NCBI GenBank assembly: GCA_965644265.1
Contig: OZ286477.1
Location: forward strand, 20,026,001-20,090,000
Direction of reading: 5' to 3'
DNA: 64,000 bases
DNA from: Glycera tridactyla
Lineage: Eukaryota
Shown here: positions 27,023-61,118 of the stretch, one piece after another
Position numbering within the stretch: position 1 is the stretch's first letter
How the letters are laid out: every line of letters starts with the position of its first letter
The notes under the pieces: model-generated
The model's input: only the letters and a program-made list of their open reading frames with translations
Database searches by the model: none
Told to the model about the DNA's origin: nothing
Translations under genes and position numbers: made by a program

Positions 27023-27024
<2 letters not shown>

Positions 27025-27139
27025 GACAAGCTGTGACTGACTGCCCTCTTGACTGTGATATACAAACTGACTACATCAATTGATCTGATTGTGTTTAGCA
27101 CCCCTGACCCGATTCTCATGTTCACCTAGACCAGGAGAA

Positions 27140-27400: not shown

Positions 27401-28769
27401 AATCCTTCTGGCCCTTGCCTCGGGCCAACACACGCATACTTTACTCGCACTTTTGTTGATGACCAGGTTATACCTCAAATAACAAGAAATGTGGTTACGA
27501 GGAAGTTAATTTGTATCTTTCACCTCAGCGTGCCGAATATGTCGATCTCACGCTGTTTCAAAGCTAATTTGGCGGTTGATTGGTTCTAATTATACGTCAC
27601 GTCAGCTCCATTCGTGCTATATATTGTGACACCAATGTCATGGACATGAGAGGGATCTTTCAAGACTCCTCCTTCTCGGTCCCAACAGAAGGTGAAAATG
27701 TATGACATTCACAGTGTAAAGGTGTCATTTCTGTTATTAAAAGTGTTGACTACAGCATTCCCCAGTGAACATGGGATTTATTTTCGGCCACTGTGTCACG
27801 CAGTGAACACGGGGATGTCCCGGCCATATCTCCATTGCTTCACATAGGCAGAATCAGCCGATAATATCGGCAGTTTCGCCGTAAAAATGCAATTAATTCC
27901 AAGCGTATCCTCTTCAAACGCATGCAGACAACCCGAAATAAAGTTCGATGATTGGCCGAAGTTCTACACATTTCATTCGTACCATTATTACTCAACTCGG
28001 GTGAGAAATGACGACTGGAATGTTTGAAACGTTACCGTCATATTGGACCTGTAAATTGGGACCACTTTCTTTTGTTTATGTTTGTTGCATTCGCCGTACG
28101 CGATTTGTCGTAAATTCAATCAACTCATGAACAATTTCATTCAACAGAAATATGGCGAAACATTAAAGCAGCATGTTTGGTACATATTTATAAGCGGCGA
28201 AACATTAAAGCAGCATGCTTGGTACATATTTATAAGCGGCATTTGTGAGAATATAATGCAATATAATTGACACTTGTCATCAAATGACGGCATGGCAGCG
28301 TCCTGCTTGATTCGTATCGTTCGTACACGCTGCCGGGTGAGCCGCGTCCCAACTTTGCGCCTAATTACCTTGACCTAATTAATGAACTAATTAAGCGAGC
28401 TCGACTTCAACAAGTTCGCACCGCAACGTCTCCTGTAGATTTCGACAATTCATCTACCAACAACGTCGTCATTATTTGAGGTATGAAAGCCAGAACCCAT
28501 GGGTTTGGCAATAATGGCAATATTCAGCTCGCTGATTACATTCTTAGAATTGCGGCCTCGTGCAATCCCTACGCCGGAACTACCTCCCAAAATATTGTGA
28601 TTAGATCCCGAAACCATGAGTTCTTGCTATATAGTATTTCTTTTCACATTACTGAGCCATTGAAGACCACAAGTTCCACTCGTGTCACGCCCTTTATCGA
28701 CATTTCTGCGTTCCCTAAAGATGAATTACGTTGTTAAGACCAGCTACTGCCGAACATAAGTGATGGGCT

Positions 28770-29290
28770 TGAATGAATTGAATTTAATTTCTTTATTCAT
28801 AATTCATATGGCAAGTGTGCATATTGCACACTAATAATTATTCAAAGAAGTCATTAAAAAAAGAATACAAATAATAAACAATATGAAAACAAAAATCAAA
28901 CATCGTTAAAACACAGTACTTAGTAATAAAAAGTGAATGATACATTTTGACCTAAGCTTGATATGAACAAGACGAACCCATCAGGTATGACATACAAGGA
29001 ATCCAGTGTTTATTCTCGATATATAAACTGGTGAATTATGACGCCTGTTCTCTTATGTTAAGACAAGTAGATTTATTAAGACTTCCAGAATCATTTCAAT
29101 CATTGAACATATATGTCAACTGTCTGCTCCATATGTTGACACTCTTTCTAAAGGACTCAATAATTTCAGCACTTCTACTGGCCATTGGAAGATCATTCCA
29201 TGACTTTGCCCCGTATATCAATGTTTGTCGAACCAAAGACGGTTTTTGTCCGTATGACACCAAGGTCCCTCCTCGCCCTGGTAGGTTGCC
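28770..29290 (-). mobile_element. L2/Crack-like LINE 3' end
   Basis: TLIYGAKSWNDLP..RSAEIIESFRK C-terminal motif, AT-rich 3'UTR, AATAAA then an (ATTCA)-type tail. Confidence 0.7.
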
Positions 29291-32200
29291 TCGTTTGTCG
29301 CCTTGTCAGTGTTCCCCGGAACTAGTGTCGCCTTTCTAGAGATTAGGCTTAGATTATTTACCAATGAGAAGTGCTGGTGTCCTACCTTGCCATACCTCTC
29401 ACTCTTCTTGTAGTGCGTCCACTTCCAGAGATTCCACAGAGCAGCAGCTGACTCGAATTTGAAGCGTACTTTTTCCCATGTTCAATCTGACACTAGTCAT
29501 GTCGCGGCCCGAGTTCCGACGCCATCACACACGCCACCAAGCGGGCACCATGCAATCCCATAAGTCATTATGCGCCCATCTATGATTTTCTGGAGTGGAT
29601 CTTTGGTACCGTGGTCCCCCCCCCCCCCATTCCTCTCTCATACCACCATAATCAAATATGTTCTTGGCAAAACTAACACCAATCCGAACACAGGCAAGAG
29701 CATTTCACCGACGTGAGATTATGTTTGAGGCACCTTTATCTAAATAATGTCATTACCAATACAAAATTTCCCCTCATATTTGCGCCATTGGGGCCTTGTG
29801 AAATTACACAGAAACCCATCAAATGGAATATGATTCAGTCTACTTACTCTCCGTGTATTCTCACTATTTTATCACAGATAATGGAATATGATTCAGTCTA
29901 CTTACTCTCCGTGTATTCTCACTATTTTATCACAGATAACTCCTGTGTGGACACTTTGTCGGTGCATACTTTGACTGGGTGGAAATCGTGCTCTCAGCAG
30001 GTGTATGAATACAGAAACCACTAGTGTTATGCGCTGCCTTCAAGTATTCGGGCACAGCCCACTCTTTCTGTTGGAAGAGTTATCCAAGTGCTTGTCTAAT
30101 GAAAATTTTGTACGTTTTGAGGCGGGATAGCTTCATTGTGAGTATTCGGCACATTTCCATTCATGGAAATGCAGGTCTTCGAGGTAGCCTATTGATCAAA
30201 TTCTCCAATATGTGCCTTGGTGCTTTTGTGTCATACGTCGCTCCGAAAACGAATTTTGTATATGTGATTGAGTTGGTGGAGTTAGATAGAGTGTATCATG
30301 CTGCACCATATAAGGTTAGGGACCACAACCACCACCACCACCACCACCACCACCATCACCGGACCACTGTTACCGTGACGTCGATATTTGACTACGTACC
30401 ATCACTGGAGTTGGCCTATGTGGTTCGGTCTGTGTCCAGGTTCCATCACAAGTGCCATTGCCCAACTTGACCTGAACCAACTGTTATCGCCGTTCTTAGA
30501 TTGATGATGACTGACCGTCTTTCTTAGATTCTAGTTCGTATACAGTTTCATGGTACCTTTCGAGGACACGCGGGTGATTGTGTTACCAGGGTACGATCCC
30601 CGGGGTTTCTGCTGTTTGCATTCTCTAATTATCGCGTCCACGGATTTTGATATTCAGGACTAAGTACAAACTGTACGATTATGTTCACTAAGGCACGAGC
30701 ATCAAATACATGACATCCTTGTAGATCACCATGTACTGTTCTCGACAAGCTTCTGATGGAAGAGATAAATAGTGTGTGGCCAAAACATTCCTTGTAACAA
30801 ATTTCAATCCATAGATGTCACTATACAATCATGGCCAAGGCTGGATATCTTATAGGGGTCGTCTGCGGCACCCAAGTTGAAGATCCAAACATAGCTCTGC
30901 TAACGGAAAGTAGGTCATGACCTACTTGATTGATGTAGGGTAAAACATACTAAGGAAGGTCTGAACTTCATCAATGGATTAGCATGACCGTTGTCCCAGT
31001 TTATCGGAGCTAATGTATGCCATCCGGGGTTATAGCACCGACTCACCCTGGTTTAGCCCAGCCAGTCAGCTCTGCCTACCGAGTTGGCTGGGCTTGGAGA
31101 CGACACTTCAGATGCTGCTGTATGTCTCATTCCTTCCACGTCTATACAGTAGCTCTGTTATACAACGACTGCGATCATGTCATTTGATTAATGAAGTTTA
31201 CCCTCATACTTTCACCCCTTACTTTCTGTACTGTACCCCAGTAAGTCCTGGAGGTCGCAGGTAGTTCCATGACCCCCGCCAATCATTCTATGTCACTAAT
31301 CACATGCCTGATTTGCATGTCACAGCGACTGCGACCCTTTCTTTGTGAATCATATATATCATATTGTGAAAAATGCAATTTGAGTATTAAAATACTGGCG
31401 ACCACAATACACGTGTAACATTACAACATGTTTATTTCGTACAAACAGATAACATGGTTCAACATACATAACATAGTTCATAGAAGGCTAACATTTGCAT
31501 CTTTACATGGATTTGTGACTATACACAGACTGCACACCTAGCATCCCACATACTTCTCTAGTATAATCATAAGCGTAGAACAAGGCATCACTTCCAACCC
31601 CAACATTGTCTTGAATATATTGCATACATTTAGTCTTTCATGCGACTCTTTTGGATTCAATGAGTTTGGGTGACAGAATCCGTTGAATGAATTTGCTGCC
31701 TGGATTAAACATTATCGAACCTCCTGACAACGACTTTCATTGATCGAATTCAGCGACACACATATGGTACTCTTCAAAAGAGAGAGTACTAGCTCCCAAT
31801 ATGGCGACAAGCCGGACCATGTTGAACTCTGATTTGACAGCGCCTTTTCCCCGGTGATTATGTTTGCTGTATGTTTCAGACGTGTCAGTGCTGAAGGTGT
31901 TGTCCCACTGACTAAACAGACTATAGATAGTTCTGTACAATTCTAGTTAGATACATTATGAAGCCCACCCAAGCTTCACAAACACATGTTGGCAGGCGGT
32001 AGCGAGCCAAGCAGCCATACAGTACGCGAAAGTCCTAATCAAATGTTGACTTTCCACCATCATCAGTCGTTTGATATGAGTCTGTGAATATGTGATGACA
32101 TAACACAATGTACGGAATAATGCAAGTGAACACCTCAGATAATGAATGGTAATATCCAGAAGCCGAAGTTATTATGTATGGCTGATGGTGGGTGAAGGTG

Positions 32201-32635
32201 TGCCACNNNNNNNNNNNNNNNNNNNNNNNNNNNNNNNNNNNNNNNNNNNNNNNNNNNNNNNNNNNNNNNNNNNNNNNNNNNNNNNNNNNNNNNNNNNNNN
32301 NNNNNNNNNNNNNNNNNNNNNNNNNNNNNNNNNNNNNNNNNNNNNNNNNNNNNNNNNNNNNNNNNNNNNNNNNNNNNNNNNNNNNNNNNNNNNNNNNNNN
32401 NNNNNNNNNNNNNNAACAGCAAAGATCCAGCATTATTGACAATTCTAGCCACGACAGAAATGCCGCTTTGCAATATATCATAGACTCCCAAAGAACATAA
32501 ATCTACCGACTTCGAAATGTGTCTATGCTCCACCACCACCTCATGACATCCTCACATCCTGAAAGCAAGCAGCACTTAATAAGGTGACTCGTGCAACCGA
32601 CAGCCTATTAGATAATGACTGAGCAGAATTAATTC

Positions 32636-33920
32636 ACATGGTTTCAAACTGTTATACCAATATAAATATTGCTCGATCCCCACCCAGACACATGGATTCA
32701 AACTGTTATACCACCCAGACACATGGTTTCAAACTGTCATACCAATATAGATATTGCTTGACCCCACACAGACACATGGTTTCAAACTGTTATACCACCC
32801 AGACACATGGTTTCAAACTGTTATACCAATATAGATATTGCTTGACCCCCACCCAGACACATGGTTTCAAACTGTTATACCAATATAGATATTGCTTGAC
32901 CCCCACCCAGACACATGGTTTCAAACTGTCATACCAATATAGATATTGGTTGACCCCACCCAGACACATGGTTTCAAACTGTTATACCAATATAGATATT
33001 GCTTGACCCCACCCAGACACATGGTTTCAAACTGTTATACCAATATAGATATTGCTTGACCCCCACCCAGACACATGGTTTTAAACTTATATCAATATAG
33101 ATATTGGTTGACCCCACCCAGACACATGGTTTCAAACTGTTATACCAATATAGATATTGCTTGATCCCCACCCAGACACATGGTTTCAAACTGTCATACC
33201 AATATAGATATTGGTTGACCCCACCCAGACACATGGTTTCAAACTGTTATACCAATATAGATATTGCTTGACCCCCACCCAGACACATGGTTCAAACTTA
33301 TACCAATATAGATATTGCTTGATCCCCACCCAGACACATGGTTTCAAACTGTTATACCAATATAGATATTGCTTGACCCCCACCCAGACACATGGTTTCA
33401 AACTTATACCAATATAGATATTGCTTGATCCCCACCCAGACACATGGTTTCAAACTGTTATACCAATATAGATATTGCTTGACCCCCACCCAGACACATG
33501 GTTTCAAACTTATACCAATATAGATATTGCTTGATCCCCACCCAGACACATGGTTTCAAACTGTTATACCAATATAGATATTGCTTGACCCCCACCCAGA
33601 CACATGGTTTCAAACTTATACCAATATAGATATTGCTTGATCCCCACCCAGACACATGGTTTCAAACTGTTATACCAATATAGATATTGCTTGACCCCCA
33701 CCCAGACACATGGTTTCAAACTTATACCAATATAGATATTGCTTGATCCCCACCCAGACACATGGTTTCAAACTGTTATACCAATATAGATATTGCTTGA
33801 CCCCCACCCAGACACATGGTTTCAAACTTATACCAATATAGATATTGGTTGACCCCACCCAGACACATGGTTTCAAACTGTTATACCAATATAGATATTG
33901 CTTGACCCCACACAGACACA
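32636..33920. repeat. Minisatellite, 54/52-bp units, about 25 copies, partly a 106-bp higher-order dimer
   Basis: cagacacatggtttcaaact(gt)tataccaatatagatattgcttga(c/t)ccccacc. Confidence 0.95.
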
Positions 33921-34596
33921 TAAGATGAGAGTTTCAGCTATGACGGGAACCGTCAAGCGTTGGCAGTTGACAGTTCAATACACATCTACACATTCACATA
34001 AACCTGATGGCCCCAACACTGGCATATATGAATACGCGGCTGGTTGGAAGCGATTTTGATATTTTGAGCGAAGCGCAGTACCTGAAACAATGTAATGCAT
34101 TAGGTTCAGAGAATACTCAAGCAATGTGTCCGCTATGATCTGCAAGCTTCGTACCAGCTTTATAGTCATGGATGTCACATACTTCCAGTACAATGCGTCC
34201 ACACCTCCCTGTGCATAGTGACTCTACTGCTACAGGCAAATCACCAGACACTCATGCGTGACTGCAAGCTCTCCTCTAACGCCAATTGGCTGTGATTGAT
34301 GAGTGCCTGATTGGTTAACAAAGTCTTACCCAAGCAAAGAATTAGGTTAACTTTAAGCACTTTTCAGCTGTACCACATAACCTGCTTTAGTTAGATGACT
34401 GTTGTAAGAAGCATGCTCGCATTGGCAGCCATATATTCTACTCGGATTTATCTGTCAAATGAAATATCGATTAGTACATAATCAAATTCATCGGATCGAT
34501 TCGCAGTATTGTAGACATACACAATGAGTCATATGCAGAGAATTAAAGCAATATATACATATTTACACATGGTCATGTGTGTGTGTGTGCCAGTGT

Positions 34597-34662
<66 letters not shown>

Positions 34663-34881
34663 CCATATGTATTCAGACAATTGGAATGACATTGTAGTTT
34701 CAGACAAATACACACTTGTTCACTTCTGTAGTCCGACCATAAAGAAGGGAATAAATAAATACATGTATACAAGCAGGTCTAGTGGGATACGCGCGACGCA
34801 ATGAGTATATACTGCAAGGCAAATGTCCTCCTCGTTGGTGGCCAGGGATGGACAAAGTTGGCCCAGCGATGAGGATAGATG

Positions 34882-37800
34882 TTAAATCCATAAGGATGTG
34901 ATGGAGATGCAGCTGGTCCCTGCCTCCGCGACATTCCGCTCCTCATCCGACATCCCAGCATCATTCTCAGCCGACATCTCAGTATCGCTGTCAGCCCCAG
35001 CCAATGCCACAGCATGCTGGATCCGGCACCATGGTACAAGAGGCAGAGATAGTCACACAGTGCGACAGCTGTCACCTGGCGCATCCCAGACACCATGGTA
35101 CAAGAGGCAGAGATAGTCACACAGTGCGACAGCTGTCACCTGGCGCATCCCAGACACCATGGTACAAGAGGCAGAGATAGTCACACAGTGCGACAGCTGT
35201 CACCTGGCGCATCCCAGTCACCATGGTACAAGAGGCAGAGATAGTCATCACACAGTGCGACAGCTGTCACCTGGCGCATCCCAGACACCATGGTACAAGA
35301 GGCAGAGATAGTCCCACAGTGCGACAGCTGTCACCTGGCGCATCCCAGACACCATGGTACAAGAGGCAGAGATAGTCGTCACACAGTGCGACAGCTGTCA
35401 CTTGGCGCATCCCAGACACCATGGTACAAGAGGCAGAGATAGTCACACAGTGCGACAGCTGTCACCTGGCGCATCCCAGACACCATGGTACAAGAGGCAG
35501 AGATAGTCACACAGTGCGACAGCTGTCACCTGGCGCATCCCAGACACCATGGTACAAGAGGCAGAGATAGTCACACAGTGCGACAGCTGTCACCTGGCGC
35601 ATCCCAGACACCATGGTACAAGAGGCAGAGATAGTCACACAGTGCGACAGCTGTCACCTGGCGCATCCCAGACACCATGGTACAAGAGGCAGAGATAGTC
35701 ACACAGTGCGACAGCTTCCACCTGGCACATCCCAGTCACCATCATCAATTCAACACGACCAGCCTCAATCAGTCCTCATCAGTTCAAATGATGTATGTAC
35801 CCTCTTGGCAGCATCTCACAAACCCCACCTTCTCATCTTCTACCCACTGACGAGAAAATACTAACCTCAACATGCAGATTGTTGAATTGGCAGTCAGGAG
35901 ATATTCTAGAAGTCATGAGATGTACGCGAGGTACCTCAGAGGTTCTTATCTAATAGTCTTAGGCTCACTCGCGGTTTGATACTCAGACTATTCATCCACT
36001 CATGGACATATAACAAATCGAATTTTGGCAATATCATTTTAGATACTGTTTTAGAATAAATGCGTTACTGGCCAACACGTTAGAAGATACAAGCAAGCAT
36101 ATTTCTTACATGATGCCCTTCACATGTATGACCAGACACTTCGCATTTTATAGATTCCATCGTTATACCGTCTGTACAATTCAAGTTCTAGTATGTCAAC
36201 TCAACCAACTGTGAATTACGCGGGCATTTATACTGGCCTGCTTGTACCCAGCTACAGCACTACCCGTGCGCTAAGTTCCGACTTGTACGAGTGTAACGGC
36301 TAGCCTTGTAACAACTGAGATGTGAGATAGCCTTCTGGTGGTTTGACTGGTATATTGACTGGTTGCTTGCTCTAGGCCCATCAACATACCTCAACATACT
36401 AGGGCTATGTATCTATGAGAGAAGTATGTTGTCTTCTACGGGCATTACATTCAGTCTCCCTGAACGCTGATGATGACAGGTCAGACAGATATATATACAC
36501 ACACTATAGTCACGGGCTGCAGGCTGACACTCCCACAAAAAACAGATCTCAAACTGAGTGAGTGCAGAAAGGCGGTCATTTGGTGGTGGAAGGAGGACCA
36601 ATACAGACAGCGTGAGAACTCATGATGCTTACTGAGACAACTACCCAGGTACACTATGCTGCCCAGCAGACTGGCTTCTATCCATGCGAACACACCCACA
36701 CTAACTCATGCCCAGTTATATACAGAGTTACATACATGACAAATATACAATCAAAAGTGATACACCTTTACTTTGTCACACATATACGATACCCCCGTAT
36801 CGTGATAAAGACACACATTTAAGCTCGCAGCTGAACACATTTACAGGCAATTTCTCTTATTTCGTTATTCGTATTCCGAGATATTTTCTGGATCAATACA
36901 GCGTTAGCCCACCCGCCCTCATCCCAACGTACACGATGACAATAGGACATCAATACAATATTTGCTTGATGTTTCAAGGTTCTATGATTGCTGATCCCTG
37001 TTTGATGACATCACAACAGACATGCCTCAATCGACATATGCATATGTGGAAGAGGGGCACATTTAAAACCACCTCTTATTACTGATGCGACAGTCTTCAT
37101 TGCGCCAGTCTACATGCAAACACTAAAGAGTCCACCTACTACATTCATTGAGAGTGCGCTAAAGAAAGGGTTGAGGTCGGAAGGAATGTGAACTCGGCTG
37201 TATCCGTCTGCAGAGCGCCATATTTTCCGAGAGGTTAGTGGGCCCATATGGCTAATGAATTAGAAATACCATGAGCCATAACTTGAAATTATGGACCACC
37301 TCATATCTATCAATGACTTGAGATGAAATAGAATACTGGGCCAGTGGACCCATACATGGCAATATCGAAGGGCCAAGAAGGCAAAAATGATGGCCCAGGG
37401 CCCGGGCCCACCAATAATCTGAAGCTATGCGCAGGGCATGTAGTTTTGGGCCAACACTGCTCCAACGCTCCAATCAACCAACAATATCACCACCACCACC
37501 GCCACCACAACTCCCATCAACGAACATCATCGTCATCCCTCCCAACCCCCTTCACTACCACCACTGTCACCACCCAACACCCATCAACACAATTAGCACC
37601 ACCTGTTGGCCTATTGTGAAAATTACCCTAAATTATTTTGTATGTCACAAAATTACAGCGTATGGGAGGGATCTATCATGATTATCTCGGATTCTTGTGA
37701 AAATTGAGTTTTGACATTCTATCATACCTGCCACTAGTGCTGCTTGAAGATTTGTTGCCAGAAATGAGAACAGGACTTTATACCATTGTGTAGCTAGGAT

Positions 37801-47165: not shown

Positions 47166-47297
47166 TCAATGATTGGATTCAGGTTGGAGATAGCCACCTT
47201 CATCTTCAGATACATCTCCCGTCTTCTGGCTCTTGCTGGCGTTCCGGCTGACAGGACGTGAAGCACCCGTCCTTCCCGCACACGCGTTTGTACACCG
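47166..47297 (-). CDS. SLC6: SLC6-like probable terminal exon (RCTNAC...GGYLQPESNH*)
   Basis: tttctttgcttttag acceptor, phase 0, 44 codons to TGA. Confidence 0.65.
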   Translation of the reverse strand, partial: RCTNACAGRTGASRPVSRNASKSQKTGDVSEDEGGYLQPESNH

Positions 47298-50200
47298 CTA
47301 AAAGCAAAGAAACATTGCAACTCTCACACTCCCCTCATTAAATCGAATGATTAGATTGATTGATTGGTATTACTTTATTTTATATCGTCACATGTACAAA
47401 ATACATATACCATTACCCCTAGTTAAGGGCATATCCATGTGCATGATAGCAACGAATTCAAGCATTACAAATATCATCAATCATAAGTATATAGAGATGA
47501 GATGAAGAAAAGTGCGTCGAAAGAAAGAAATATGGTATGAAAATGAACATGTAGATAAGGGTAGGTCGAGTTAAAATACACGATTGAAGAGATATGGCGA
47601 CAATGGACAAGTCAAGCGGAGTTGTCACATATTGTGGTGGTCCACTTGGGAGGTCGCTCATCAACGAGGACAATTGTAAATGCTCGGGATCAATAAACAA
47701 CCAACACCCAGCTGACTGGAGCGACACCGGACACCGACATCACCAGCACTGATATCTTAGTGCTGATGTAGATACACTGTCAAATCTGCCTATAAAGACA
47801 GCCTTCGGTCTCATCAAAAAGTGGCCTTTATGAACAGGTAGCCTCTACAGAGAGGCCATTTGATGTTGAAATTACTATCAGGGTGAGGATGGCCTCTATA
47901 GGCGGGTGGTCTTTATAGAGAAGTGGTCTATCGAGCAGGATGAACTGTAACTGCTGAAGTGAGAGCTAACTCTGGTACACTCCCTCCCACCTCAGTCACA
48001 ACCCACGTGGAGCAAATGATCTCCCAACTCATATTTTGCGCATGGGTAAATTGTGATGTGGCTGAAAGTGCCAGCAATGCAATACCGAGACTTGCAGTCT
48101 GCCAGACGGGAATACCATTATCTTGCAAGTTAGAAGGACATATTTACGGATTGTACATGGTACGGAATAATATGCAATATTCTGACCGAAGTTGATATTC
48201 TTCGTTGACCTCATACATGGAAGCCAAGTAAATGAGAGCGGAAATGTATGCTCCTATCTAGTGAGTAAATTTACGGACAATTTAATCGTGATGATCTATT
48301 TAGAACATGTGAGACCATGAAAATGTATAAAATCGCACATTGCCTCTCATTAAGGGCTAGCACAATATGATGCTAAACTCACCATCGTATTTGCCCTCTT
48401 GCAACTCCCTACAGTATTAAGCTTGCCTGCTCTGTGTATTTTCTCAATATTGAGATTCAACCACTTGTTGCAGAACACGGGGTTCGGCGGGTGCGCACTT
48501 GGGACGATGCTCTGCCTTCCCGTGTTCCTACATCTGACTGCTTTTCATGGACATCTGATAATCTGACACCACTTCTAATTGGTACAAATAGCTGGAATAT
48601 TCTTATTGCTTATTCGTACTAACCTCGCAGCCGGCGCCGTCGGCAGCACCGATAGCATGCATGGCGCCAAACAGCATGCCGACCACGATGAAACCGCCGG
48701 CGATGAACCAGCCCAGTACCACGGCCCACGGAGGGTACTCGAACTCCTCGCCGTACTTGATGCCCCGGGAGAAGGAGGCATATTCCTTCAGCACTCCACC
48801 CTTGTAGATGCATAACAATACCTGCAACAACCAGGACACTCTCAACTCGACCGTATTGTTGGTACATTGACAGATGAAGTTCGTCCTCTTGTTTGATGTG
48901 TATCGTGGGGTTCAATATTCACTGCCCGACTTTGATACCTGATCAGTTTTTGACACGTGTCCCTGTTTCCCAAGCAATTGATTCATACTGGCGGAGGGAG
49001 GGGAGAATGTTTGGAGATAGTACAGCCACTACTTACTATCACTTTGAAATCAGATCTGTCTGCATGGGGTTAAAATAAAGCCTGATTCAAAGAACATATG
49101 AAAATAGGAGGGACGTATAAGTTATGCTGAAACTGGCATGTCCCTGGTTGTTTTGGATGTCTGGAGGCAAATGGAGATAGGAAGGTGCTGACCAATCCTG
49201 CGCACAGCTACCGCCATGGCTGTATACTAGTGTCGCACTTACCGTAAAGAGGCCTGACAGCACAAACCACACTGAGAATGCCACTCTGTTTGCCAGATGG
49301 TAACGCTGTTTGGCTGCAACACATGTCAAAACCAAGCCTTATTTTACGCCAATACAACAAGTGTACCCCAGTATACATGAAATGATCGGTCTAATTGTGG
49401 TCTAATATCTGCTCTGGTTTCACTGGAACTAGTGCAATGCAAGGCTGGTCATTCATCGTGTGTCACTGCAGAATCCTTTAGACAATCTTTGACCACTCTT
49501 GTCCCAGTTGACAGCAGTACATTGAATAACGGGCGGATGAAGGTATTGTAACTTTGTGTATTGTGCGGACCTCAACCAGAAAATCCCACATGGACAATAT
49601 TTGATGGGTTTGTTCAATTGTAACATATTTAGGGAGAACTAGGAAGCTTCGGATGAGCTTAGGATTGCATTCAGAATGACAGAGAGAAATTCAAGTTGGA
49701 TATTGCATGAGGTGAGCATCGGGAGTCATGGAGTATACACGAGTCTTAAGTCTACTAGAAATGATAGAAGGAAAATGACCTACCATAAGATATCGTAAAT
49801 GCAATGAAACTGAAGAAAACGACAATACACATAAGTTTGTCGATCCACCCCATGACAAGCATCACCACATACAGGCCTCCCTATACAGAGAAACAAAGCA
49901 CACATAATGACAACCTGACAGAGTACCTACTACATGTAGAACACATTCAACATCACAGCTGAGTACACAATAAGAACATCTACCTAGTAGGAAGGCAAAA
50001 TCGGGGTTAGCGACGGACACTCTTGGATACTATAGCAAGATCCCCTACCTGAGGGACACGGGTGTCACCAGCTCCAGAATGCTGTTATACTCTCTCGAAT
50101 CCGAACGTTGGCTTTTTAAGAGGATGGGCCCTCATATTTTTGCGTTTTTACGACGAATCCGCCGGCATTGTCGGCGATTCCCTGTATGTGAATTAGTGGA

Positions 50201-53200
50201 GATACAACCGCCACACTTGCCGTGAAACCAGCGTGAAATCGACATATTTGGCGTTCTGAGGTAAAATATTCACGGGAACTACGCCTTCATTTCTAGTCGC
50301 TAGAGATGTTGACAAAGTCTGTCAGTGAGTTTCATTTCGATCCGATGCAAATTGGCGATGCTAGAGTGAAGAGCATCCCGGTCAGTGCCGTCACGATTGA
50401 ACTTGACATACTTTACCAGGTCTCGAAGGTCAATATTATTGGTCTTCGAATTTAGTAACTCCCCCGAATCCCGAGGAGACTGAATTTTGTTTCGAGAGGG
50501 TGGAAGACCCAACTCAGTCTCTCGATGGGAGAGTGCATTTTGCAGTTGATCAGAACGTAATACTCCTACAAAAACCCCTTTTCTCGGCGAGATGACATTG
50601 CATATACATGCACATGTTTGATTCTGGAGAACGAACCTCAGCAGAAAATGGGTTGGCGTTACTTAGCTGGTCACTCACATGATGGATAGGTTGGAATTCA
50701 CGTCATGATGAGGCATTCACTCACATTAATGTCTTGCTCTCAAGATAGCCTCGTTTAAGCTTGTGTTCCTTGTACTTTTTAAACAAATTCGGGAGAGTGA
50801 ACATTTCTCGGGAGAGTGATTTTCTCAGTCTGCTCCTCCGATGGTAGGGTTGCTGACAGTATTTTTAGTGAGGCCTGGGTGTAGAGTGGTTGATGTGGCG
50901 GTACTACTGACCTGGGTGACCATGGGTATGCCGAGGATGAAGCCGGCCAAACAGAAGAGACCTGCGGTGAGCAGGAACCAGCCGGGCTTCTTACAGCCAC
51001 ATTTCCCCACCACCACGATGTGCTTCACCCCGTCCACGATATTATCCACAGCCACGATGGAAGACAGAGCCTGCAACAGATCAACTCATAATCACACCCA
51101 CCATCCAACCTACTGCCTCTCACTGTTACAAGTACTGCACTTTCTTCATGATGAAGCATTGCCAGCATCCAGCCAGACACATAGCTACACATGCCATATT
51201 AAGGTTCACCATGTTCATATTAGATACTTGGAGGAGTGTCTGAACTGTCAGCTACTTCCACTCGACAACCTTTCAGGTCCCCATCACCTTGTGTCTAGGG
51301 TTTGTGTGAGTGATGTCTGCAGGGTAGAGAAAACATCTAGCGTTCATTAACCAGGAACACACGACATACATAATCCCCTGCGAGGATACATGTCAAACAG
51401 TCAATCATTCCATCGATACAATGGACAGCTGGGGCAATACCAAGGTGAGATCGGTGGAACTATATCATGACAGCAAGGACAGGTGTCATCGTACTGATGA
51501 TGCAGGTCGTGGTGGAGGGGAGGGGGAGGGGGTATCGAAGAATGGCTATGACACTGATGGTTTTGTGAGGTGATATTGATATTATTGTTGGTGGAGTTGA
51601 TGGTGTTTGTTTTGGCGGTTCAGGGGGTGTTCGTGAAGGTGGTGATGGTGCTGGTGGTGGTGGTGGTGAAGGCAGTAGTGGTGGAGGAGGCGGTTGGGGT
51701 GTAGATATTGGTGTCGGGGATGGTGGTGTTGGTGTTGGTGTTGGCGGTTCAGGTGGTGCTGGTGAAGGCGGTGGTGAGAGCGGGAGTAGTCTAGGCGGCG
51801 GCGGTGGTGGTGGTGATGCAGATGGGGTTGGTTTGGGTTTTAGTATTGGTTTGATATCCTCTTCCGGGTGAAGCCTCGAGTTAGAGTAAATTTTTTGAGA
51901 CTATTAAATAACCATCGGATCCAACTAAGTGTGGAGTATGTAAGAAGAGAAAAACATCCTTGTGGCCAATTTTTCATGACCATACACGACCTACCTGTGC
52001 TTGCAGGGTAAAGAGTGTCATCGTCAAGTAGAAGATGAAGGCTACACCTCTCTTGATCTCCAGGCGATGGAAAACGGCAGGAAAGTTGATAAATAACAGC
52101 GAATGACCTGAGACAGAATCCCAATGTCTGGATGAGCAGGGATGTTGTGGGATAAAGGATGACATCAGTGTGACTCAGGTTGATGTCTGGATGAGCAGGG
52201 ATGTTGTGGGATAAATGATGACATCAGTGTGACTCAGGTTGATGTCTGGATGAGCAGGGATGTTGTGGGATAAATGATGACAGCAGTGTGACACAGGTTG
52301 ATGTCTGGATGAGCAGGGATGTTGTGGGATAAATGATGACATCAGTGTGACTCAGGTAGATGTCTGGATGAGCAGGGATGTTGTGGGATAAATGATGACA
52401 GCAGTGTGACACAGGTAGATGTCTGGATGAGCAGGGATGTTGTGGGATGAATGATGACATCAGTGTGACTCAGGTAGATGTCTGGATGAGCAGGGATGTT
52501 GTGGGATGAATTATGACATCAGTGTGACTCAGGTAGATGTCTGGATGAGCAGGGATGTTGTGGGATAAATGATGACATCAGTGTGACTCAGGTAGATGTC
52601 TGGATGAGCAGGGATGTTGTGGGATAAATGATGACATCAGTGTGACACAGGTAGATGTCTGGATGAGCAGGGATGTTGTGGGATAAATGATGACTTCAGT
52701 GTGACTCAGGTAGATGTCTGGATGAGCAGGGATATTGTGGGATAAATGATGACATCAGTGTGACTCAGGTAGATGTTGTCTTGTTGTATTATTAAAGGCC
52801 TCTCATCATTATGATATGNNNNNNNNNNNNNNNNNNNNNNNNNNNNNNNNNNNNNNNNNNNNNNNNNNNNNNNNNNNNNNNNNNNNNNNNNNNNNNNNNN
52901 NNNNNNNNNNNNNNNNNNNNNNNNNNNNNNNNNNNNNNNNNNNNNNNNNNNNNNNNNNNNNNNNNNNNNNNNNNNNNNNNNNNNNNNNNNNNNNNNNNNN
53001 NNNNNNNNNNNNNNNNNNNNNNNNNNNNNNNNNNNNNNNNNNNNNNNNNNNNNNNNNNNNNNNNNNNNNNNNNNNNNNNNNNNNNNNNNNNNNNNNNNNN
53101 NNNNNNNNNNNNNNNNNNNNNNNNNNNNNNNNNNNNNNNNNNNNNNNNNNNNNNNNNNNNNNNNNNNNNNNNNNNNNNNNNNNNNNNNNNNNNNNNNNNN

Positions 53201-56200
53201 NNNNNNNNNNNNNNNNNNNNNNNNNNNNNNNNNNNNNNNNNNNNNNNNNNNNNNNNNNNNNNNNNNNNNNNNNNNNNNNNNNNNNNNNNNNNNNNNNNNN
53301 NNNNNNNNNNNNNNNNNNNNNNNNNNNNNNNNNNNNNNNNNNNNNNNNNNNNNNNNNNNNNNNNNNNNNNNNNNNNNNNNNNNNNNNNNNNNNNNNNNNN
53401 NNNNNNNNNNNNNNNNNNNNNNNNNNNNNNNNNNNNNNNNNNNNNNNNNNNNNNNNNNNNNNNNNNNNNNNNNNNNNNNNNNNNNNNNNNNNNNNNNNNN
53501 NNNNNAGACACGCTCAGCTGAACTCCAGAAGGTCAACTCAGAGGGAAAGCATGGCTGTGCCAACACACCTACCAACACTGATTGGCAGGTTCGCAGAAGT
53601 TACTCCCCATTTTCATGATTCAACTGATGAGTGTGCAGGAAAGTGCAGATGGAAGATCACATGACCACATGAAACATCCAGCAGGGGGTGGGGACACGGG
53701 CATAATCAGGGGTATAACAAGCCCGATCGAAATACAGAAAATCCACTGGATCCTGGATGCCGCTTTTCCCCCATGGCCACTTGTCTCGTCTTTTTTTGCC
53801 ATTGTGGGTCATTAAAACTGTTGAAGTCCACTTTCGCCTCACATTTATCGCCAGCCGATCCTGAGCTCATAATTATCACAACCCAACACCTGTATCATGT
53901 GGCTGATAATTTGATGTTCATATTTTGATACTATGTGTCGATGTAATCAGTGGAACAACTCTTCATTCTGAACCAAGCCTACTCCCCACTTATCAATTTT
54001 TATCAAGAAATATATGACTTTGTCGGCTGCAGTGCCATTTTGAGTGTCTGTGATTTTCAGGTGTGACTGTGAAAGCTGACCAAACTGATGAGGTGGTAGT
54101 GTTCACAGGCGGGTATTTGAAATGTGGTGGAGATGAGAGGGAGGGGGAGGAGAGTCGTCTTACCTTCTGTGAGTGTTGCCCTGAGGTCTGTGCCGAGGGC
54201 GGTGGCCAGGGCGTTCATGTAGCAGCTGATCATGAAGATAAACAGATGCGGCAAGATACATAGGGCCACGAACAAAAACACCCACCGGCTGAAACATGGG
54301 ACGTGAGACAGGTTGACAATACATCATATTAGGTAATTATCCAAGTGCACACTCGGGGTATAGGCATGAAGAGAATGAGTCTGAGAGGTCGCTATCAATA
54401 CAGTTTGTCTACATGACTGCGCTACTTCAGTTTTGTCAAATGATTGATCCACCATTAGCATTAACGTTTGCATCCCCACATACCATTACATTATGAGGCC
54501 GATACAAGATATCAAACACTACATCAACTGTTTGTGACATTTTGGAGATTCTTCACCGACCTGGATTGAAATGCACATGCAATCGAACTACTCGAGGATC
54601 AATGTCCATTTTATTTCGGTCCATGTTGACGCCAACGAAGCCCCATGGATATTTTCGTATCACCTGGACATTCACTGATCGGCGGGGAAGGGGGGGGGGG
54701 GGGGTGGTGATGTCTACCTGTTTGTGACTAATCTTCCTCTTCCACTGTACTTGCCGAGGGTGGGTAATAATCCATCCCATACACGAGACATGAGAACCGC
54801 CCAGTAGATGCCCTGTAACCACGGCTGAAACAATAATAATCTCTGTCAATAGCTTGCCCCCCTGATCCAGTTTACCACATGACGCACATGTAGAAGCCAG
54901 TCCTTATATTGACTTATGTGAGTGTCGGTGTGACATGAGTAGGTTATTCCATATGCCTCAACCAAGACGGACACAATCTCAACAAGCAATACCTTCTTGA
55001 CTTGTAGGAGGTCGTGTCTTGCCAGGGTGAATCTCCATGACAATGAATAGGGTTGACATCAGGGCGAAGGTGGGGTAGACACGAATGCAGATCCTCTACA
55101 GAAGAGCTCAGGATTTGAACAGGAAGGAAATGTGAAAGATGAAGACGATGAGACGAGAACGTCGGCGGTGATCGCGGAGAAGGAGAAAAGTGGAGAAGGA
55201 AAGAAACGGAAAGGNNNNNNNNNNNNNNNNNNNNNNNNNNNNNNNNNNNNNNNNNNNNNNNNNNNNNNNNNNNNNNNNNNNNNNNNNNNNNNNNNNNNNN
55301 NNNNNNNNNNNNNNNNNNNNNNNNNNNNNNNNNNNNNNNNNNNNNNNNNNNNNNAACAAGAAACAGAAGATCAACAACACCAACAACAGCCATCGACAGA
55401 AGAAGACCATGCAAAATAAAAGGAGAAAGGATAATACGAATTAACTATAGAAGAAGCAGAAGAAGAAAAAGAAGAGAAAGAAGAGGAAGAAGGGTGAGAA
55501 GGAGAGGAAAAGAGACGGAAAAGGAGAGGGCTGAGGAGAGGATGAAGGAGGAGAAAAAGAATAGTAGAAAGTGGAGGGGGAGAGGATATGAGTGAGGAAA
55601 GAAAATAGTAAAGGAAGGTATATGAGAGAGATTGTTAGTGTGAGAGTTGTGCGTGGGACATGACGAGTGTGGGGGTAGACGTGTGTAGAAGGCTCCCGTT
55701 CTGACTGTGCCTACCCCGACGAAGGCTTCCACGGCATCAGGGATGGTGATCTTGTCCCAGTCAGCCGAGTAGATGTTATATTCGGGAGAGCCGTGTTTGA
55801 TCTCCTCGCGACCGTACGCCAGCAGGGCCACCGTTAATGTGGTACCCAGACCTCCAAACACGAACATCACCTGCAACACCACAACACCAGCCTTCTTACA
55901 CTCCATGTCTTCCTCGTGGATGACTGTAATATTCACACGATGAGACAATATGCTACAATATGCTACACTATGCTACAAGGCTTCACTACTTTATTTTTCT
56001 TCAGAGGTGTATTCCTGACACATCTCCCCCTCTACAACGTTTGACATCAGGAAGAGTATATCACATCGCAATTCTATTACAGAATACAGACTATTGAACG
56101 GGAGACGGACCATACAGATACCATCATCCACCTAGCGACCCCTCTTTAAATCTATATGTTCAGGTACGGCCACAGAACTAAACCTAAATTCTGTACACCA

Positions 56201-59200
56201 CATGTGCGATCAAGCCATCGAATTATAGCAAATGATAGCAGCTGGCATGATATAGACAATAGACAACAGACACTTTTTTCAGATATGAGAGGCGGTACAG
56301 GGATTACTTGCATACAGATGATATATAATGTCAAATATGAATCATTAGGCTATTGGCCTACTCTCCTACAAGTGGTAATATTTAATCATTCAAGAGAGGA
56401 TCATGCCTGCAGCACCACCTCTCAATGTCCTTCACGTCTGCCTGATGGTGTCCGTGTCTGACTGCCTATGTGTAACAAGCATAACGTACCCATCCAAACC
56501 ATCGTATACCTCCGCACATACACAGGAAGGTCAGCACCCACGATCCCAGCAGACACAGAAGCAATTTCCATGGCAACGTCCCCTCGCTAGCGATCTCATC
56601 TGATATCATCAAGACGTCATTCCTTGAAGAGCATCAGACACAGGATTAGGTGATGTAGGTGTATGTGTGTGTGTGGAGTGGGGGGGGGGGGGCAGTCAGT
56701 TTATATCAGTCATGTGGGCGTGGTCGGTGTTGTTATTGGGAGGAGAGCATGCCACCTAAAGACTGTGGTTATTTGAATGTCATAAGGCAATTTCAAGAAC
56801 GATGAATCAAATTCGCCATTAGTGATATTCTCATGAGAAGCAAACATTGTATTCACGTTACCTATGAGTGACTGATCTCAACTGGCTTTTGGTGGCTTCT
56901 TGTTTGGTTTCACCTCATATGGGGCAAAGTTCTGTCTTTTGATACGTCAGCCCGAAGCCCAACTACAGTTCTTGCCTATGAATGGTACCGAGGAGACTTT
57001 TACATTGAACAAATAAGAGGTCAATCAATCCAGCAAGCAACTTGCCGACCAGTCGTCACGCGGTATGTGTAGTGAGGACTTACTGGAAGAATTCAGCTTC
57101 AACCGGCACATCCGATCCCGAGAAGGCCGACCTACATTGAAACAGAGATGTCAACAATATTGGCTGGCTCTACCTGAAGATGGGTGAAACTGAGATGTAT
57201 CCTGACCCATATGGAAAGTAACCCCCCCCCCCCACTCATCTGTTTTACGCACTCGCTATATATCCTCGGCTGATGTCTATTCAGATATGCAAGATATATA
57301 TATTTGATCTGACAAATCTACCAGTAGACGGTTTCTTCTTGAACCTCTTTGTTAAAACAACGACGACAACAACAACAACAACAACAACAACAGCAAAGAG
57401 TCCTATTGCTGCTGCTACCAATAGCAATAGTAGTAATCGTAAAAGTAGTAGTAGTTTCCTGGCAATTACCTCGCTCTGCACTATGAATGAAGGCGACAGA
57501 ACACATAAACATGTCGATGGCTTTTTGTTTTGTATGAGAAGTACAAGTGCAAAGGATGGGAAAAGGGNNNNNNNNNNNNNNNNNNNNNNNNNNNNNNNNN
57601 NNNNNNNNNNNNNNNNNNNNNNNNNNNNNNNNNNNNNNNNNNNNNNNNNNNNNNNNNNNNNNNNNNNNNNNNNNNNNNNNNNNNNNNNNNNNNNNNNNNN
57701 NNNNNNNNNNNNNNNNNNNNNNNNNNNNNNNNNNNNNNNNNNNNNNNNNNNNNNNNNNNNNNNNNNNNNNNNNNNNNNNNNNNNNNNNNNNNNNNNNNNN
57801 NNNNNNNNNNNGCTTGGGACGAAGATGCGATGGCCGTATTTCTAATTAATGTTTCATTAATGGCGGCTAATACATACGTGGAATTGTCACATTTCTCGGT
57901 GGCCCAGCTGTTGTTGCAGGAGCTCCAGGGATAGGGTTGAGTTAGAGACTGTGCCGCATAGAATATATTGTAGGCAACAAACACATTATAGGCGATGGCT
58001 AGTAGAAACAGACGGATCATATTGGCCACCCCGACACCTGCAACAAGACAAGGTAACACACACATTGTAAGCGATGGCTAGTAGAAACAGTCGGATCATA
58101 TTGGCCACCCCGACACCTGCAACAAGACAAGGTAACACACACTCACTCACATCATAGAACTCAATTTTTGAAACAAATTAACTTTGGGCATCTGACAAGA
58201 TCGGGGGTTTATTTGAAATAATGATTTTTGAAGGAGCTTAACATGATCGATCATGCGTTTCCTCGTGGCCTCCCTACTTATTCAGTCTACGACATGAAGA
58301 AGAGTATCTATCTTAACAGGCTGTAAGAAATCAGCCAAATCCATATAGCGGTGCTGCCTTTGAGTATCACGAGATCGAAACATTTTTCACTTGTGAGTGT
58401 TACTAGGCTGAAATGCTATGTATGTTAGTCAAACCAATTAAACAAACAAACAACCGATTAATACATATATGTATTATTCGATCTTTCCGGTGCTGCAGTT
58501 TTTTTTAATTTTGATCGAGAGGTATATACTTGGTAGGGTGCAATGCACTACCTGTGATTGGATCTTGACCCCCCTCTCTTGTGCTTGCTNNNNNNNNNNN
58601 NNNNNNNNNNNNNNNNNNNNNNNNNNNNNNNNNNNNNNNNNNNNNNNNNNNNNNNNNNNNNNNNNNNNNNNNNNNNNNNNNNNNNNNNNNNNNNNNNNNN
58701 NNNNNNNNNNNNNNNNNNNNNNNNNNNNNNNNNNNNNNNNNNNNNNNNNNNNNNNNNNNNNNNNNNNNNNNNNNNNNNNNNNNNNNNNNNNNNNNNNNNN
58801 NNNNNNNNNNNNNNNNNNNNNNNNNNNNNNNNNNNNNNNNNNNNNNNNNNNNNNNNNNNNNNNNNNNNNNNNNNNNNNNNNNNNNNNNNNNNTGACTGAT
58901 CTGTGGTCACTTTTCGTGGTGCCACCGCTAGCCTGTGATCATTCGATCAAGATTTCTGATAGGCACTCATGCGATCACCCGACCTTAGAGGAACGTGGCT
59001 CATGCCTGTTTCTGCATTTCCAGATCAACTTATATATTGTGTTTACTAGCAATACAGGGTGCCCTTTGAGTATAGGTACGTATTGTGGATACCTGTAATG
59101 CAGGGTAACCTACGAGTGCATGTGCATATTGTGGCTACCTCTAGTCCTGCTCACCTTTGAGTATGGGAACATATTTGGAGAAGATAGAGACGATGTTGCT

Positions 59201-60465
59201 GTGAGTGCTGCCACCTAGCCGCATCTGGACGTAAATGACTGGCATGACGATGATGAACATCCCCACGTAGAAAGGGATGAAACCAGCAGCTGTAGCAAGA
59301 AACCACAAACATGACTGCAACACTGCAACACTGCAACACTGCTCACATACAGCATGATGCACCTCACTGGCCTCATTCACATCTACACTGGCGTGGTGGC
59401 ATTATGAAGCCGCTTCATATTTTGCCCTGCTTCGATGAATTTTCGTACCATTGTTTTGAGATGTCTACATGAATACCTGCTCCTAGAAATCGTTGGGATC
59501 TGATTGACCCATGTAAGAATGCTATTCCCCGATCCTTGCGTTATGGAAATAACTCATTTCTGCTAATGATCATGTCTGTGACATACGTCTGATATTGATT
59601 GTGAGAAGAGCTTGTATCACGAGGATGTCCTCAAGTCTAGATTTGTCAGATGCTGGCCTGAGACACCTGTACGGAAGTAACTCCATGCCAGGATAAAGCG
59701 GGACACACTGCAATGTGTGTTGACTGAGACATCTCCAGCAGAAATACTTTGCAAAACATGATATACAGTCGAACCTGCTCTGAAGACCACCTCTCTATAA
59801 AGGCTACCCTGAACTGCGACCGTGGTAGTATTTTCAACATTAAATATCCTCTCTGTGCCTGGTGAAAACAAAAAGGTGTACAAGGATTCTAACTCAGAGC
59901 CGGACGTCACCCAACACCAAACCCGATCTTCATCCACCCTCAACATGCATCAAATACACATGGAGTAGTTAATAATCGGCTAACCTCAATAACTCTGTTC
60001 GAGTGAAAATGAGTTCTACTCAATACCTGCAGAATACATGATGTATAACCCTGAAACTCACAGGCAGAGAAGAATCAACACACTACGTCTTGTACCACTG
60101 TTTATTTATTCACAGCTGGGTGTGGGGGAGCAGTAGTGTACGGAGGCTCCACTTAGCCCCACCCCCCCCCCCCTCTCAGTTTTCTTCTTCAACGAGTGCG
60201 AACGATAGATTGTATGTCCATCGTAGAACTGCACTCATTTGACTAAACGCTTCTCACTACCAGACAACTTGATACTTAGCTGCAAGATGTAATACCAAGG
60301 AAAAATCTAATTTGTCTGATATTATAAAATATCAAATTTCTTACCCGATTTCTCGAAGATGAATCGAGGAAACGACCAATACATCTGAAGGCCGACGAAG
60401 CAGGCGGAGACTCCCATGAACTGCAGGATACCCCAGGCGGGTTTCTTGCCATTTATCGACGCCAT
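47166..60465 (-). CDS. SLC6: Divergent SLC6 / neurotransmitter:sodium symporter family protein, 13 coding exons
   Basis: Exons: 60465-60345 (TM1), 59289-59155 (TM2), 58037-gap (TM3/EL2), 56622-56490 (TM4), 55870-55715 (TM5), 54824-54718 (TM6), 54288-54164 (TM7), 52107-51995 (TM8), 51070-50912 (TM9), 49880-49784 (TM10), 49313-49243 (TM11), 48821-48624 (TM12), 47297-47166 (tail). Visible junctions are GT-AG and phase-compatible; the exon 3 donor is in a gap. EL2 motif PWSSCNNSWATEKC and EYPPWAVVLGW are present. Confidence 0.88.
47775..47947. mobile_element. MITE of the same family as 6279-6456, opposite orientation
   Basis: Degenerate TIRs, shared gcctataaagac and tggcctctata blocks, TA flanks. 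Confidence 0.75.
48624..48821 (-). CDS. SLC6: SLC6-like exon, TM12 (EFEYPPWAVVLGWFI)
   Basis: 198 nt, phase 0-0, gttagt donor. Confidence 0.9.
49243..49313 (-). CDS. SLC6: SLC6-like exon, TM11 (shortened)
   Basis: 71 nt, phase 1-0, gtaagt donor. Confidence 0.75.
49784..49880 (-). CDS. SLC6: SLC6-like exon, TM10 (GGLYVVMLV...ISY)
   Basis: 97 nt, phase 0-1; not in the ORF track. Confidence 0.87.
50088..50632. mobile_element. Possible non-autonomous DNA transposon
   Basis: Degenerate TIRs tactctctcgaatccgaacg / tgtttgattctggagaac, CpG-rich interior inside an SLC6 intron. Confidence 0.35.
50912..51070 (-). CDS. SLC6: SLC6-like exon, TM9 (...GFILGIPMVTQ)
   Basis: 159 nt, phase 0-0. Confidence 0.88.
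51995..52107 (-). CDS. SLC6: SLC6-like exon, TM8 (GHSLLFINFP...TLQAQ)
   Basis: 113 nt, phase 1-0, aligns to GP.L.F..YP. Confidence 0.87.
52124..52775. repeat. Minisatellite, 59 bp x about 11
   Basis: gatgtctggatgagcagggatgttgtgggataaatgatgacatcagtgtgactcaggta. Confidence 0.95.
54164..54288 (-). CDS. SLC6: SLC6-like exon, TM7
   Basis: 125 nt, phase 2-1, gtaaga donor. Confidence 0.85.
54718..54824 (-). CDS. SLC6: SLC6-like exon, TM6 (PWLQGIYW...GLLPTLGKY)
   Basis: 107 nt, phase 0-2, aligns to W..A..QIFFS..G.L.A..SY. Confidence 0.78.
55715..55870 (-). CDS. SLC6: SLC6-like exon, TM5 (VMFVFGG...YSADWDKIT)
   Basis: ttgcag acceptor, GGG|gtaggc donor; the donor position is less certain. Confidence 0.78.
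56490..56622 (-). CDS. SLC6: SLC6-like exon, TM4 (NDVLMISDEI..GTLPWKLLLCLLGSW)
   Basis: 133 nt, phase 2-0; not in the ORF track. Confidence 0.85.
57812..58037 (-). CDS. SLC6: SLC6-like exon, TM3-EL2 (3' end in N gap)
   Basis: GVGVANM...PYPWSSCNNSWATEKC. Confidence 0.9.
59155..59289 (-). CDS. SLC6: SLC6-like exon, TM2 (GFIPFYVGMF...PILKG)
   Basis: 135 nt, phase 1-1, gtgagc donor. Confidence 0.88.
60345..60465 (-). CDS. SLC6: SLC6-like exon, TM1 (MASINGKKPAWG...YWSFPRF)
   Basis: Acceptor at 60486, in-frame TAG before the ATG, G|gtaag donor. Confidence 0.75.
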
Positions 60466-60899
60466 GATTTCCCGCTAGGTGTCACCTGCAACCAGATCAG
60501 AAGAACACCAGAGTCAGTGGCCGTGGCGATGCCTGACGTACACGACGGACGTGTGATACTTATTCAGTGTGCATTTCCCCGATTAAAGATTCATTGTCCA
60601 TTTCCTGGATCGAAGAAAACTGATTTAAACAGCAATCAACTTTTATCACATGACTGTATTTTTTCCGCATAGATGGCGACAATCGTGATTCCCACAGGTT
60701 AAAATGTCTACAGATAAGGAGGAGTCACAATTTACATGCACTCATCACCCTGGGGGCTGAACCCAGTCCCAGGTATGGAAGCTCTCGCCTGGTAGTAGGA
60801 ATACCCGTATCTTTGCGATGTAATACCCCTATATAGCAGCCAATTGTTCACGGGGCTTCCTGTGATTTACTTGTCATCTAAAGACTACTGTCTTTACTG

Positions 60900-61118
60900 A
60901 ACCGCCCAACCAACCCACTGACCAACCGACTAACCACCCAACCACCCAACCAACCACCGACCCAACCAACCAACTGACCAACCACCCAACCACGCCATCG
61001 ACCAACCGACCAACCACCCACCCAACCAACCAACCAACCAACCAACCGACCAACCAACCAACCAATCAACCAACCAAAACAACCAACCGACCGACCAACC
61101 ACCTAACCAACCAACCAA
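60900..61118. repeat. (CCAA)n microsatellite
   Basis: Read directly. Confidence 0.92.

Follow-up and report, generated by a model that had tools for sequence, protein, structure and literature searches.

The SLC6 family is the textbook case of Na+/Cl−-coupled secondary transport, and from bacteria to humans the residues responsible for coupling are, to our knowledge, almost unchanged. In SERT/LeuT numbering, the sodium site Na1 is formed by an asparagine of transmembrane helix (TM) 1 (N101), a serine of TM6 (S336) and an asparagine of TM7 (N368). The side chains of the sodium site Na2 are D437 and S438 of TM8, and R104 of TM1 forms the extracellular gate. Other coupling arrangements are found in the wider LeuT-fold (APC) superfamily, in which vSGLT and Mhp1 rely on the Na2-equivalent site alone and ApcT, CaiT and AdiC are sodium-independent. 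Here, a 64,000-nucleotide (nt) stretch of the Glycera tridactyla genome (GCA_965644265.1, contig OZ286477.1, positions 20,026,001 to 20,090,000), referred to as the window, was analyzed. A gene on its minus strand, at positions 47166–60465, encodes a protein of predicted SLC6 fold, with 581 amino acids (aa) in the final model of 14 coding exons. An earlier note, made from the letters of the window, had described this locus as an SLC6 transporter that appears to have lost its sodium sites and outer gate, and the present analysis shows which of these changes are borne out.

A Divergent Member of the SLC6 Family

The spliced model was compared with a canonical profile built from 101 transporters of the γ-aminobutyric acid (GABA)/betaine/taurine/creatine type, and it matched this profile with 140 bits (E 4e-45). 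In hhalign the probability was 100%, with 529 columns covered and an identity of 23%. Hydropathy analysis revealed 11 strongly hydrophobic segments where TM1–5 and TM7–12 are expected, plus the usual weaker TM6. The C-x8-C pair of extracellular loop (EL) 2, of the disulfide type and already pointed out in the earlier note, is present in exon 3 as CNNSWATEKC and is kept in three relatives of the gene that are described below.

When the exons were scanned singly, exon 3 (50.7 bits, E 1.6e-13) and exon 4 (28.9 bits) matched the Pfam SNF family (PF00209; curated cut-off 27), and none of the remaining exons, TM1 included, gave a Pfam match. This blank for most single exons indicates a far divergence of the gene. 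Among structures in the PDB, the best matches of exon 3 (TM3) were GlyT2 and PROT (E 1.5e-9), the nearest to exon 4 (TM4) were GAT3 (E 2e-4) and PROT, and the searches with the single exons of TM1 and TM8/9 gave nothing usable. Exon 2 (TM2) showed a weak match to BGT1, in whose alignment a Glu to Gln exchange was seen. Since the nearest neighbor changes exon by exon, the gene falls into no single known SLC6 subfamily.

Replacement of the Na1, Chloride and Gate Residues

The TM1 context ACFVGLQMYWSFPR aligns to the canonical motif GLGNVWRFPY, and the same placement was obtained with hmmsearch, hmmalign and hhalign. The motif reads GLQMYWSFPR in this gene (residues 25–34, positions 60364–60393 on the minus strand, within exon 1), with Met in place of the Na1 Asn, Gln in place of the preceding Gly and Ser in place of the gate Arg. 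The exchanges N101M, G100Q and R104S that had been read by eye are thus borne out by three independent alignments. In TM2, the canonical LE.ALGQ is replaced by VQMRLGG, with Gln at the position of the conserved Glu.

At the serine of the TM6 “FFS” motif, Met, Ala or Trp was found according to the register: Met in a gap-free register anchored on the Trp and the SYN-type Tyr, Ala with hmmalign and Trp with hhalign, with no hydroxyl in any of them. The change of FFS to WAV proposed earlier holds in part, in that neither Ser nor Thr stands at this position in any register, but the exact register could not be fixed. The absence of Asn from TM7, also proposed earlier, was observed among residues 289–309. 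All three Na1 ligands tested (TM1 Asn, TM6 Ser/Thr, TM7 Asn) are absent. The TM1 Met is shared with a near-full-length homologue of the gene (JARPMW010000512.1, see below).

By contrast, the change of LDS to LQA that had been claimed for TM8 proved to be an artefact, the L and the Q being the translated intron acceptor TTGCAG. In the spliced text, the exon ending in ...FIMKK is followed by ALSSIVAV from position 51070 (KK/ALSSIVAV, the slash marking the exon boundary), so a Ser is retained at the position of the Na2 Ser or right next to it. The profile alignment placed Leu-Ser on the Asp-Ser of LGLDS and a shift of one residue would give Ser-Ser; the second Na2 side chain (the Asp/Thr position) is Leu or Ser depending on this shift. 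At the level of residues, the proposed loss of the sodium sites therefore stands for Na1, but the loss of Na2 is left without support because it rested on intron read-through.

The salt bridge of the outer gate, formed canonically between the TM1 Arg and an Asp or Glu of TM10, is replaced by Ser and Met in this gene and by His and Arg in the homologue. The claimed loss of the gate was founded on the Arg to Ser exchange, which was upheld, and the Met of TM10 adds to it. Regarding the chloride site, the TM2 Tyr is Phe here (Tyr in the homologue), the TM6 Ser and the TM7 Ser are absent, and the TM6 Gln is found in two of the three registers. Most of the chloride-site residues appear to be replaced, and judged by its residues the protein would fall outside the Na+/Cl−-dependent functional class.

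Relatives, Shared Residues and Selection

An exhaustive search of 1.84 billion representatives was performed with exon 3 as the query. The best match, at 57% identity, was a fragment of just 100 aa, the full-length matches were only ~25–32% identical overall, and two top matches were spurious bacterial repeat proteins. Neither a close full-length relative nor a copy of this protein was found by this search, and a word search with the open reading frame (ORF) of exon 3 gave no close relative of 48–154 aa in the searched collection. Two fragments share SL-x-QPY-x-W in place of the usual ...ELPW.

Members of the same subfamily were detected in nucleotide sequences. A 763-nt contig, on which the first of the two fragments is located, comes from a sample named as a marine biofilm metagenome (PMC6355793) and carries the 160-nt exon 3 and a 48-nt microexon in the same phases as this gene. 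The ratio of nonsynonymous to synonymous substitution rates (dN/dS) between the two was ~0.29 over the 68 codons of both exons. The near-full-length homologue, unannotated in assembly GCA_029980185.1, was reached from the second fragment. It was traced through 13 exons in collinear order, which correspond to exons 1–11 of the numbering used here, all GT-AG and in frame, with an intact ORF of 473 residues; six of these exons are identical in length to those of this gene. The record JAAUXT010037428.1 holds the same gene as the homologue, and JAAUXW010336928.1 contains exon 3 of a further member. Over 467 residues the homologue is 40% identical to this protein, with dN 0.59 and a saturated dS of ~2.1. 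A dN/dS near 1, which the earlier note had named as an argument against function, was found in neither of the two comparisons.

Both proteins have a short N-terminus (...KKP-x-W, with a ...KKPPW start in the homologue), the TM1 Asn to Met exchange and, in TM2, the Glu to Gln exchange followed by Arg. They also have in common WLQG...VW-D/E-G..PT.GKY in TM6, VAVDNIVD in TM8 and FFSF.AFT.SYAKQ in TM10. The canonical set has 200 columns with a conservation of 95% or more; 58 of these are kept in this gene and 56 in the homologue, and at 31 of the changed columns both carry the same new residue. This pattern of shared derived residues and conserved motifs points to an old, selected subfamily and not to decay.

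The two members differ at other places. The TM8 text ALSS reads LYVS in the homologue, and the two residues before it are Lys-Lys here and Thr-Gln there; for this reason the Lys pair ending exon 8, considered as a mimic of Na2, was rejected. The intron between TM4 and TM5 lies 7 codons further downstream in the homologue and in another phase (55870/56490 here, 4439/4902 in the homologue), the protein length being equal. Additionally, two exons are split by extra introns in the homologue, which has such introns inside the TM8/TM9 exon and before TM12. A mixed alignment of the 13 exon peptides with a full-length homologue was discarded as a search profile, MAFFT having stacked the fragments wrongly.

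No description of such an SLC6 branch was found by full-text searches of the literature, which is weak as evidence of absence. Database SLC6 proteins with altered motifs were encountered, as in the springtail Allacma fusca, with LSYGNIWRFPY in TM1 and LGTH for LGLDS in TM8, and orphan SLC6 genes of a divergent kind may be widespread among invertebrates.

Transcription and Gene Model

Four sequencing runs of one study, labelled as RNA by guess only, were compared with the locus. About 11–12% of the sampled words of positions 50900–60470 were present in the runs, near the exonic share of this region (~15% of the non-N bases). Contigs of the four runs were mapped onto positions 54700–60470, that is, onto exons 1–6. 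Spliced contigs of 2230–3765 nt were obtained, with 0–2 mismatches per exon and CT..AC (GT..AG on the gene strand) at every skip. On the minus strand they join 60345>59289 (present in four runs), 59155>58037, 57878>57131, 57084>56622, 56490>55870 and 55715>54824. These contigs are most simply read as mRNA, because six introns are precisely spliced out in long contigs that come from four samples, and the gene is therefore transcribed. The expression check proposed in the earlier note is thus answered by spliced transcripts that match the model for exons 1–6. What stands at the locus is a genuine protein-coding gene that is transcribed, and its product, of 12 predicted helices, belongs by homology to the SLC6 family.

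The first chain of 13 exons had been put together from stop-to-stop frames and splice sites read by eye, and the RNA contigs added a fourteenth, a 48-nt microexon at 57084–57131. This microexon lies between exons 3 and 4 and is left out of the exon numbering 1–13. It has AG/GT sites, is joined on both sides in all four runs (4/4) and has a counterpart of equal size in the biofilm contig. It supplies the piece of EL2 (...VEAEFFQ) that was formerly absent between Pfam positions 139 and 161. The earlier count of 13 exons was corrected in this way, and the claim of an intact reading frame with intact splice sites was confirmed: the ORF begins with the ATG at 60465 and stays open until the stop codon TGA at 47166–47168, AG/GT flanks each exon, all introns are GT-AG and the phases are consistent throughout. 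No second copy of the gene was found within the 64-kb window.

All four gaps of N fall in introns of the model. Three of them (58590–58892, 57568–57811 and 55215–55354) are skipped by the RNA joins. The fear that a stop or a frameshift was hidden in the gap 57568–57811 is removed by its intronic position, and the joins in the RNA likewise ruled out a hidden exon in this gap or in a read-through past exon 3, the part of EL2 that was lacking being the microexon. The fourth gap (52819–53505) lies in the intron between the exons at 54164–54288 and 51141–51244, which fit each other in phase and spacing. A minisatellite of 59 bp, with at least 11 copies that are 96% alike, occupies positions 52124–52776 of this intron (between exons 7 and 8) and runs into the gap at 52819.

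All exons lie on the minus strand. Exon 1 (60345–60465) contains the start codon, a very short N-terminus and TM1; an in-frame stop codon precedes the ATG by 4 codons, and G/GTAAGA serves as the donor. Exon 2 (59155–59289), with splice sites and RNA joins on both sides, encodes TM2 with its Glu replaced by Gln, together with intracellular loop (IL) 1 and the approach to TM3, and ends in ...PILK(G). The final 26 nt of this exon recur in degenerate form at 59063–59089, just inside the following intron.

Exon 3 (57878–58037) encodes TM3 and the EL2 cysteine pair and carries the first of the two Pfam SNF matches. The end of intron 2, the acceptor and the first 57 nt of this exon are part of a 79-bp tandem duplication at 57972–58142 (minus strand; 2.2 copies, 94% alike). 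The RNA uses the downstream copy of the duplicated acceptor, with the join to 58037; use of the upstream copy would lead the frame into a stop.

Exon 4 (56490–56622) encodes the end of EL2 and TM4 and was identified by the second Pfam SNF match, the GAT3 match and RNA joins. Exon 5 (55715–55870), with TM5 and EL3, is likewise joined in the RNA and is 47% identical to its counterpart in the homologue. Exon 6 (54718–54824), present as an RNA piece of these same positions, encodes TM6 with the subfamily motif WLQG...VW(D/E)G..PT.GKY; the exon of the homologue is also of 107 nt, at 47% identity.

Exon 7 (54164–54288) contains TM7, without Asn, and was placed by its AG/GT sites and phase; the homologue has an exon that is also 125 nt long. 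Exon 8 (51141–51244) encodes EL4 and the first half of TM8, up to ...FIMKK, and was placed by phase and spacing; its acceptor is weak, and the exon of the homologue likewise starts with (x)VQ. With this exon the spacing from TM7 to TM8 is 54 residues in the spliced model against 55 in canonical proteins. Another candidate for the TM8 exon, at 53623–53808, was ruled out, being without a usable acceptor and superfluous for the length. Exon 9 (50912–51070) contains the second half of TM8 (ALSSIVAVDNIVD) and TM9, with acceptor TTGCAG/GCT and donor CAG/GTCAGT, and its VAVDNIVD is identical in the homologue.

Exon 10 (49784–49880) encodes TM10, with Met at the position of the gate Asp; it is flanked by splice sites, and the exon of the homologue is also of 97 nt, at 55% identity. 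Exon 11 (49243–49313), with IL5 and the start of TM11, has splice sites and a counterpart in the homologue. Exon 12 (48624–48821) contains the end of TM11, EL6 and TM12 (YPPWA..GW), and was supported by splice sites, a profile match and a counterpart in the homologue at 44% identity. The last exon (47166–47297; exon 13 by the earlier count and the 14th coding exon) encodes the C-terminal tail and the stop, after the acceptor TTTTAG/CGG.

Several repeats were also observed around the gene. In intron 1, positions 59758–59845 were matched by hundreds of transcript contigs with summed depths of 20,000–35,000 and many loose ends, and this stretch probably belongs to a transcribed mobile element that is present in very many copies. 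Just upstream of the 5′ end of the gene, a simple repeat at 60874–61118 reads (GWLV)n in several minus-strand frames. Moreover, the homologue carries tandem repeats of its own, of the end of exon 2 with its donor (...EYCPILKG/GTGAGT; positions 2852–2935) and of the start of the TM12 exon (positions 9237–9620).

Discussion

These results are best accounted for by a working protein of SLC6 fold in which the Na1, chloride and gate residues have been replaced and whose coupling has probably changed, a reading that we hold to be probable from the sequence comparisons. The protein would fold like an SLC6 carrier and appears to be kept by purifying selection. Neither Na1 nor chloride would be bound in the canonical way and the Arg-Asp outer gate is gone; the canonical Na1/Cl−-coupled cycle would probably be out of its reach. 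Most likely it is a carrier with a changed coupling, which would use at most the Na2 site, or be coupled to protons, or work by uniport or exchange. A carrier is favored by the conservation of TM1 and TM6, the broken helices of the substrate site, which rank among the regions most strongly conserved within the subfamily. The gene would belong to a selected, lineage-restricted SLC6 subfamily, with few sequences so far, from marine invertebrates.

Several points weigh against this reading. The register of the alignment between TM6 and TM7 is uncertain. A single near-full-length relative, either an orthologue or a paralogue, is available, and both the gate and the TM8 positions differ between the two members, with no single pattern of replacement there. 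Since dS is saturated, the dN/dS values are rough and averaged over a long history, and present-day constraint in this species is not proven by them. Finally, exons 7–13 rest on splice sites, phase and homology, and the acceptor at 51244 is weak.

A selected branch that keeps the fold while its Na1, chloride and gate residues are changed would be a natural experiment, separating what alternating access needs from the parts that serve coupling only, and could reveal a new substrate or a new mode of coupling in marine invertebrates. Standard domain scans detect only 2 of the 14 exons, so that such genes are readily overlooked or wrongly annotated.

Among more specific proposals, a sodium-independent carrier (a uniporter, an exchanger or a proton-coupled transporter) or a ligand sensor, in a subfamily of marine invertebrates that would have abandoned Na1, chloride and the outer-gate salt bridge for new conserved residues in TM1, TM2, TM6, TM8 and TM10, is put forward tentatively. 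If this holds, no other branch of SLC6 would have been coupled in a different way before it was found. Rather doubtful is a protein that is still coupled to sodium through Na2 alone, the loss of Na1 and chloride altering the stoichiometry and not the principle. Many other LeuT-fold carriers, vSGLT and Mhp1 among them, work in this manner, Na2 is made largely of backbone carbonyls of TM1 and TM8, and in the corrected TM8 text ALSS a Ser is still present at the Na2 Ser position or adjacent to it, all of which would suit such a protein; but with LYVS in the homologue this Ser is not conserved in position, and the identity of the second Na2 side chain, Leu or Ser, hinges on a shift of one residue.

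That transport was lost altogether, the protein acting as a sensor or scaffold or as the partner of some other membrane protein, seems unlikely, and less likely than a carrier with altered coupling. Both residues of the extracellular gate and several intracellular gate partners are replaced, the substrate-site Tyr of TM3 is not fixed between members, and the N-terminus has only ~10 residues, all of which would agree with a role other than transport. However, all 12 helices and the discontinuous regions of TM1 and TM6 are strongly conserved in the subfamily, beyond the apparent needs of a scaffold. A duplicate in decay that is still transcribed, as a young pseudogene so far without a stop, might be suspected from the extreme divergence (58 of the 200 highly conserved columns kept) and from single exons such as TM1 that match nothing in Pfam or PDB, but is very improbable, since neutral drift at this divergence would not leave a 1.7-kb ORF, 14 exons and all splice sites open, the relative at 40% identity has likewise stayed intact and collinear, its dN being far lower than dS, and the derived residues are common to both members and not random. 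The view of the earlier note that the gene may be functional rather than a pseudogene is in line with this, and with the splicing of exons 1–6 as modelled and the 31 shared derived residues; the ion-uncoupled carrier, sensor or scaffold that the note proposed is an inference.

From established knowledge, the protein can be likened to ApcT, CaiT and AdiC, which are without the canonical Na1/Na2 side-chain ligands; it would share with them the overall fold and, at Na1, this lack. Those carriers are of separate families and have a Lys or Arg, or a proton, in place of Na2, whereas here no conserved basic residue is found at the Na2 position, the Lys pair before ALSS being absent from the homologue. 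Compared with the SLC6/SNF family itself, including GlyT2 (SLC6A5) and PROT (SLC6A7), the gene differs in its N-terminal tail of only ~10 residues, in the exchanges in TM1 (Asn to Met, the preceding Gly to Gln, Arg to Ser), TM2 (Glu to Gln) and TM10 (Asp to Met), in a TM7 without Asn, and in TM6, where QIFFS gives way to another, subfamily-conserved motif. It shares with the family the W-x-F-P in TM1, the PW before the EL2 cysteines, the GG-x-Y at the start of TM10 and the YP-x-WA...GW before and in TM12.

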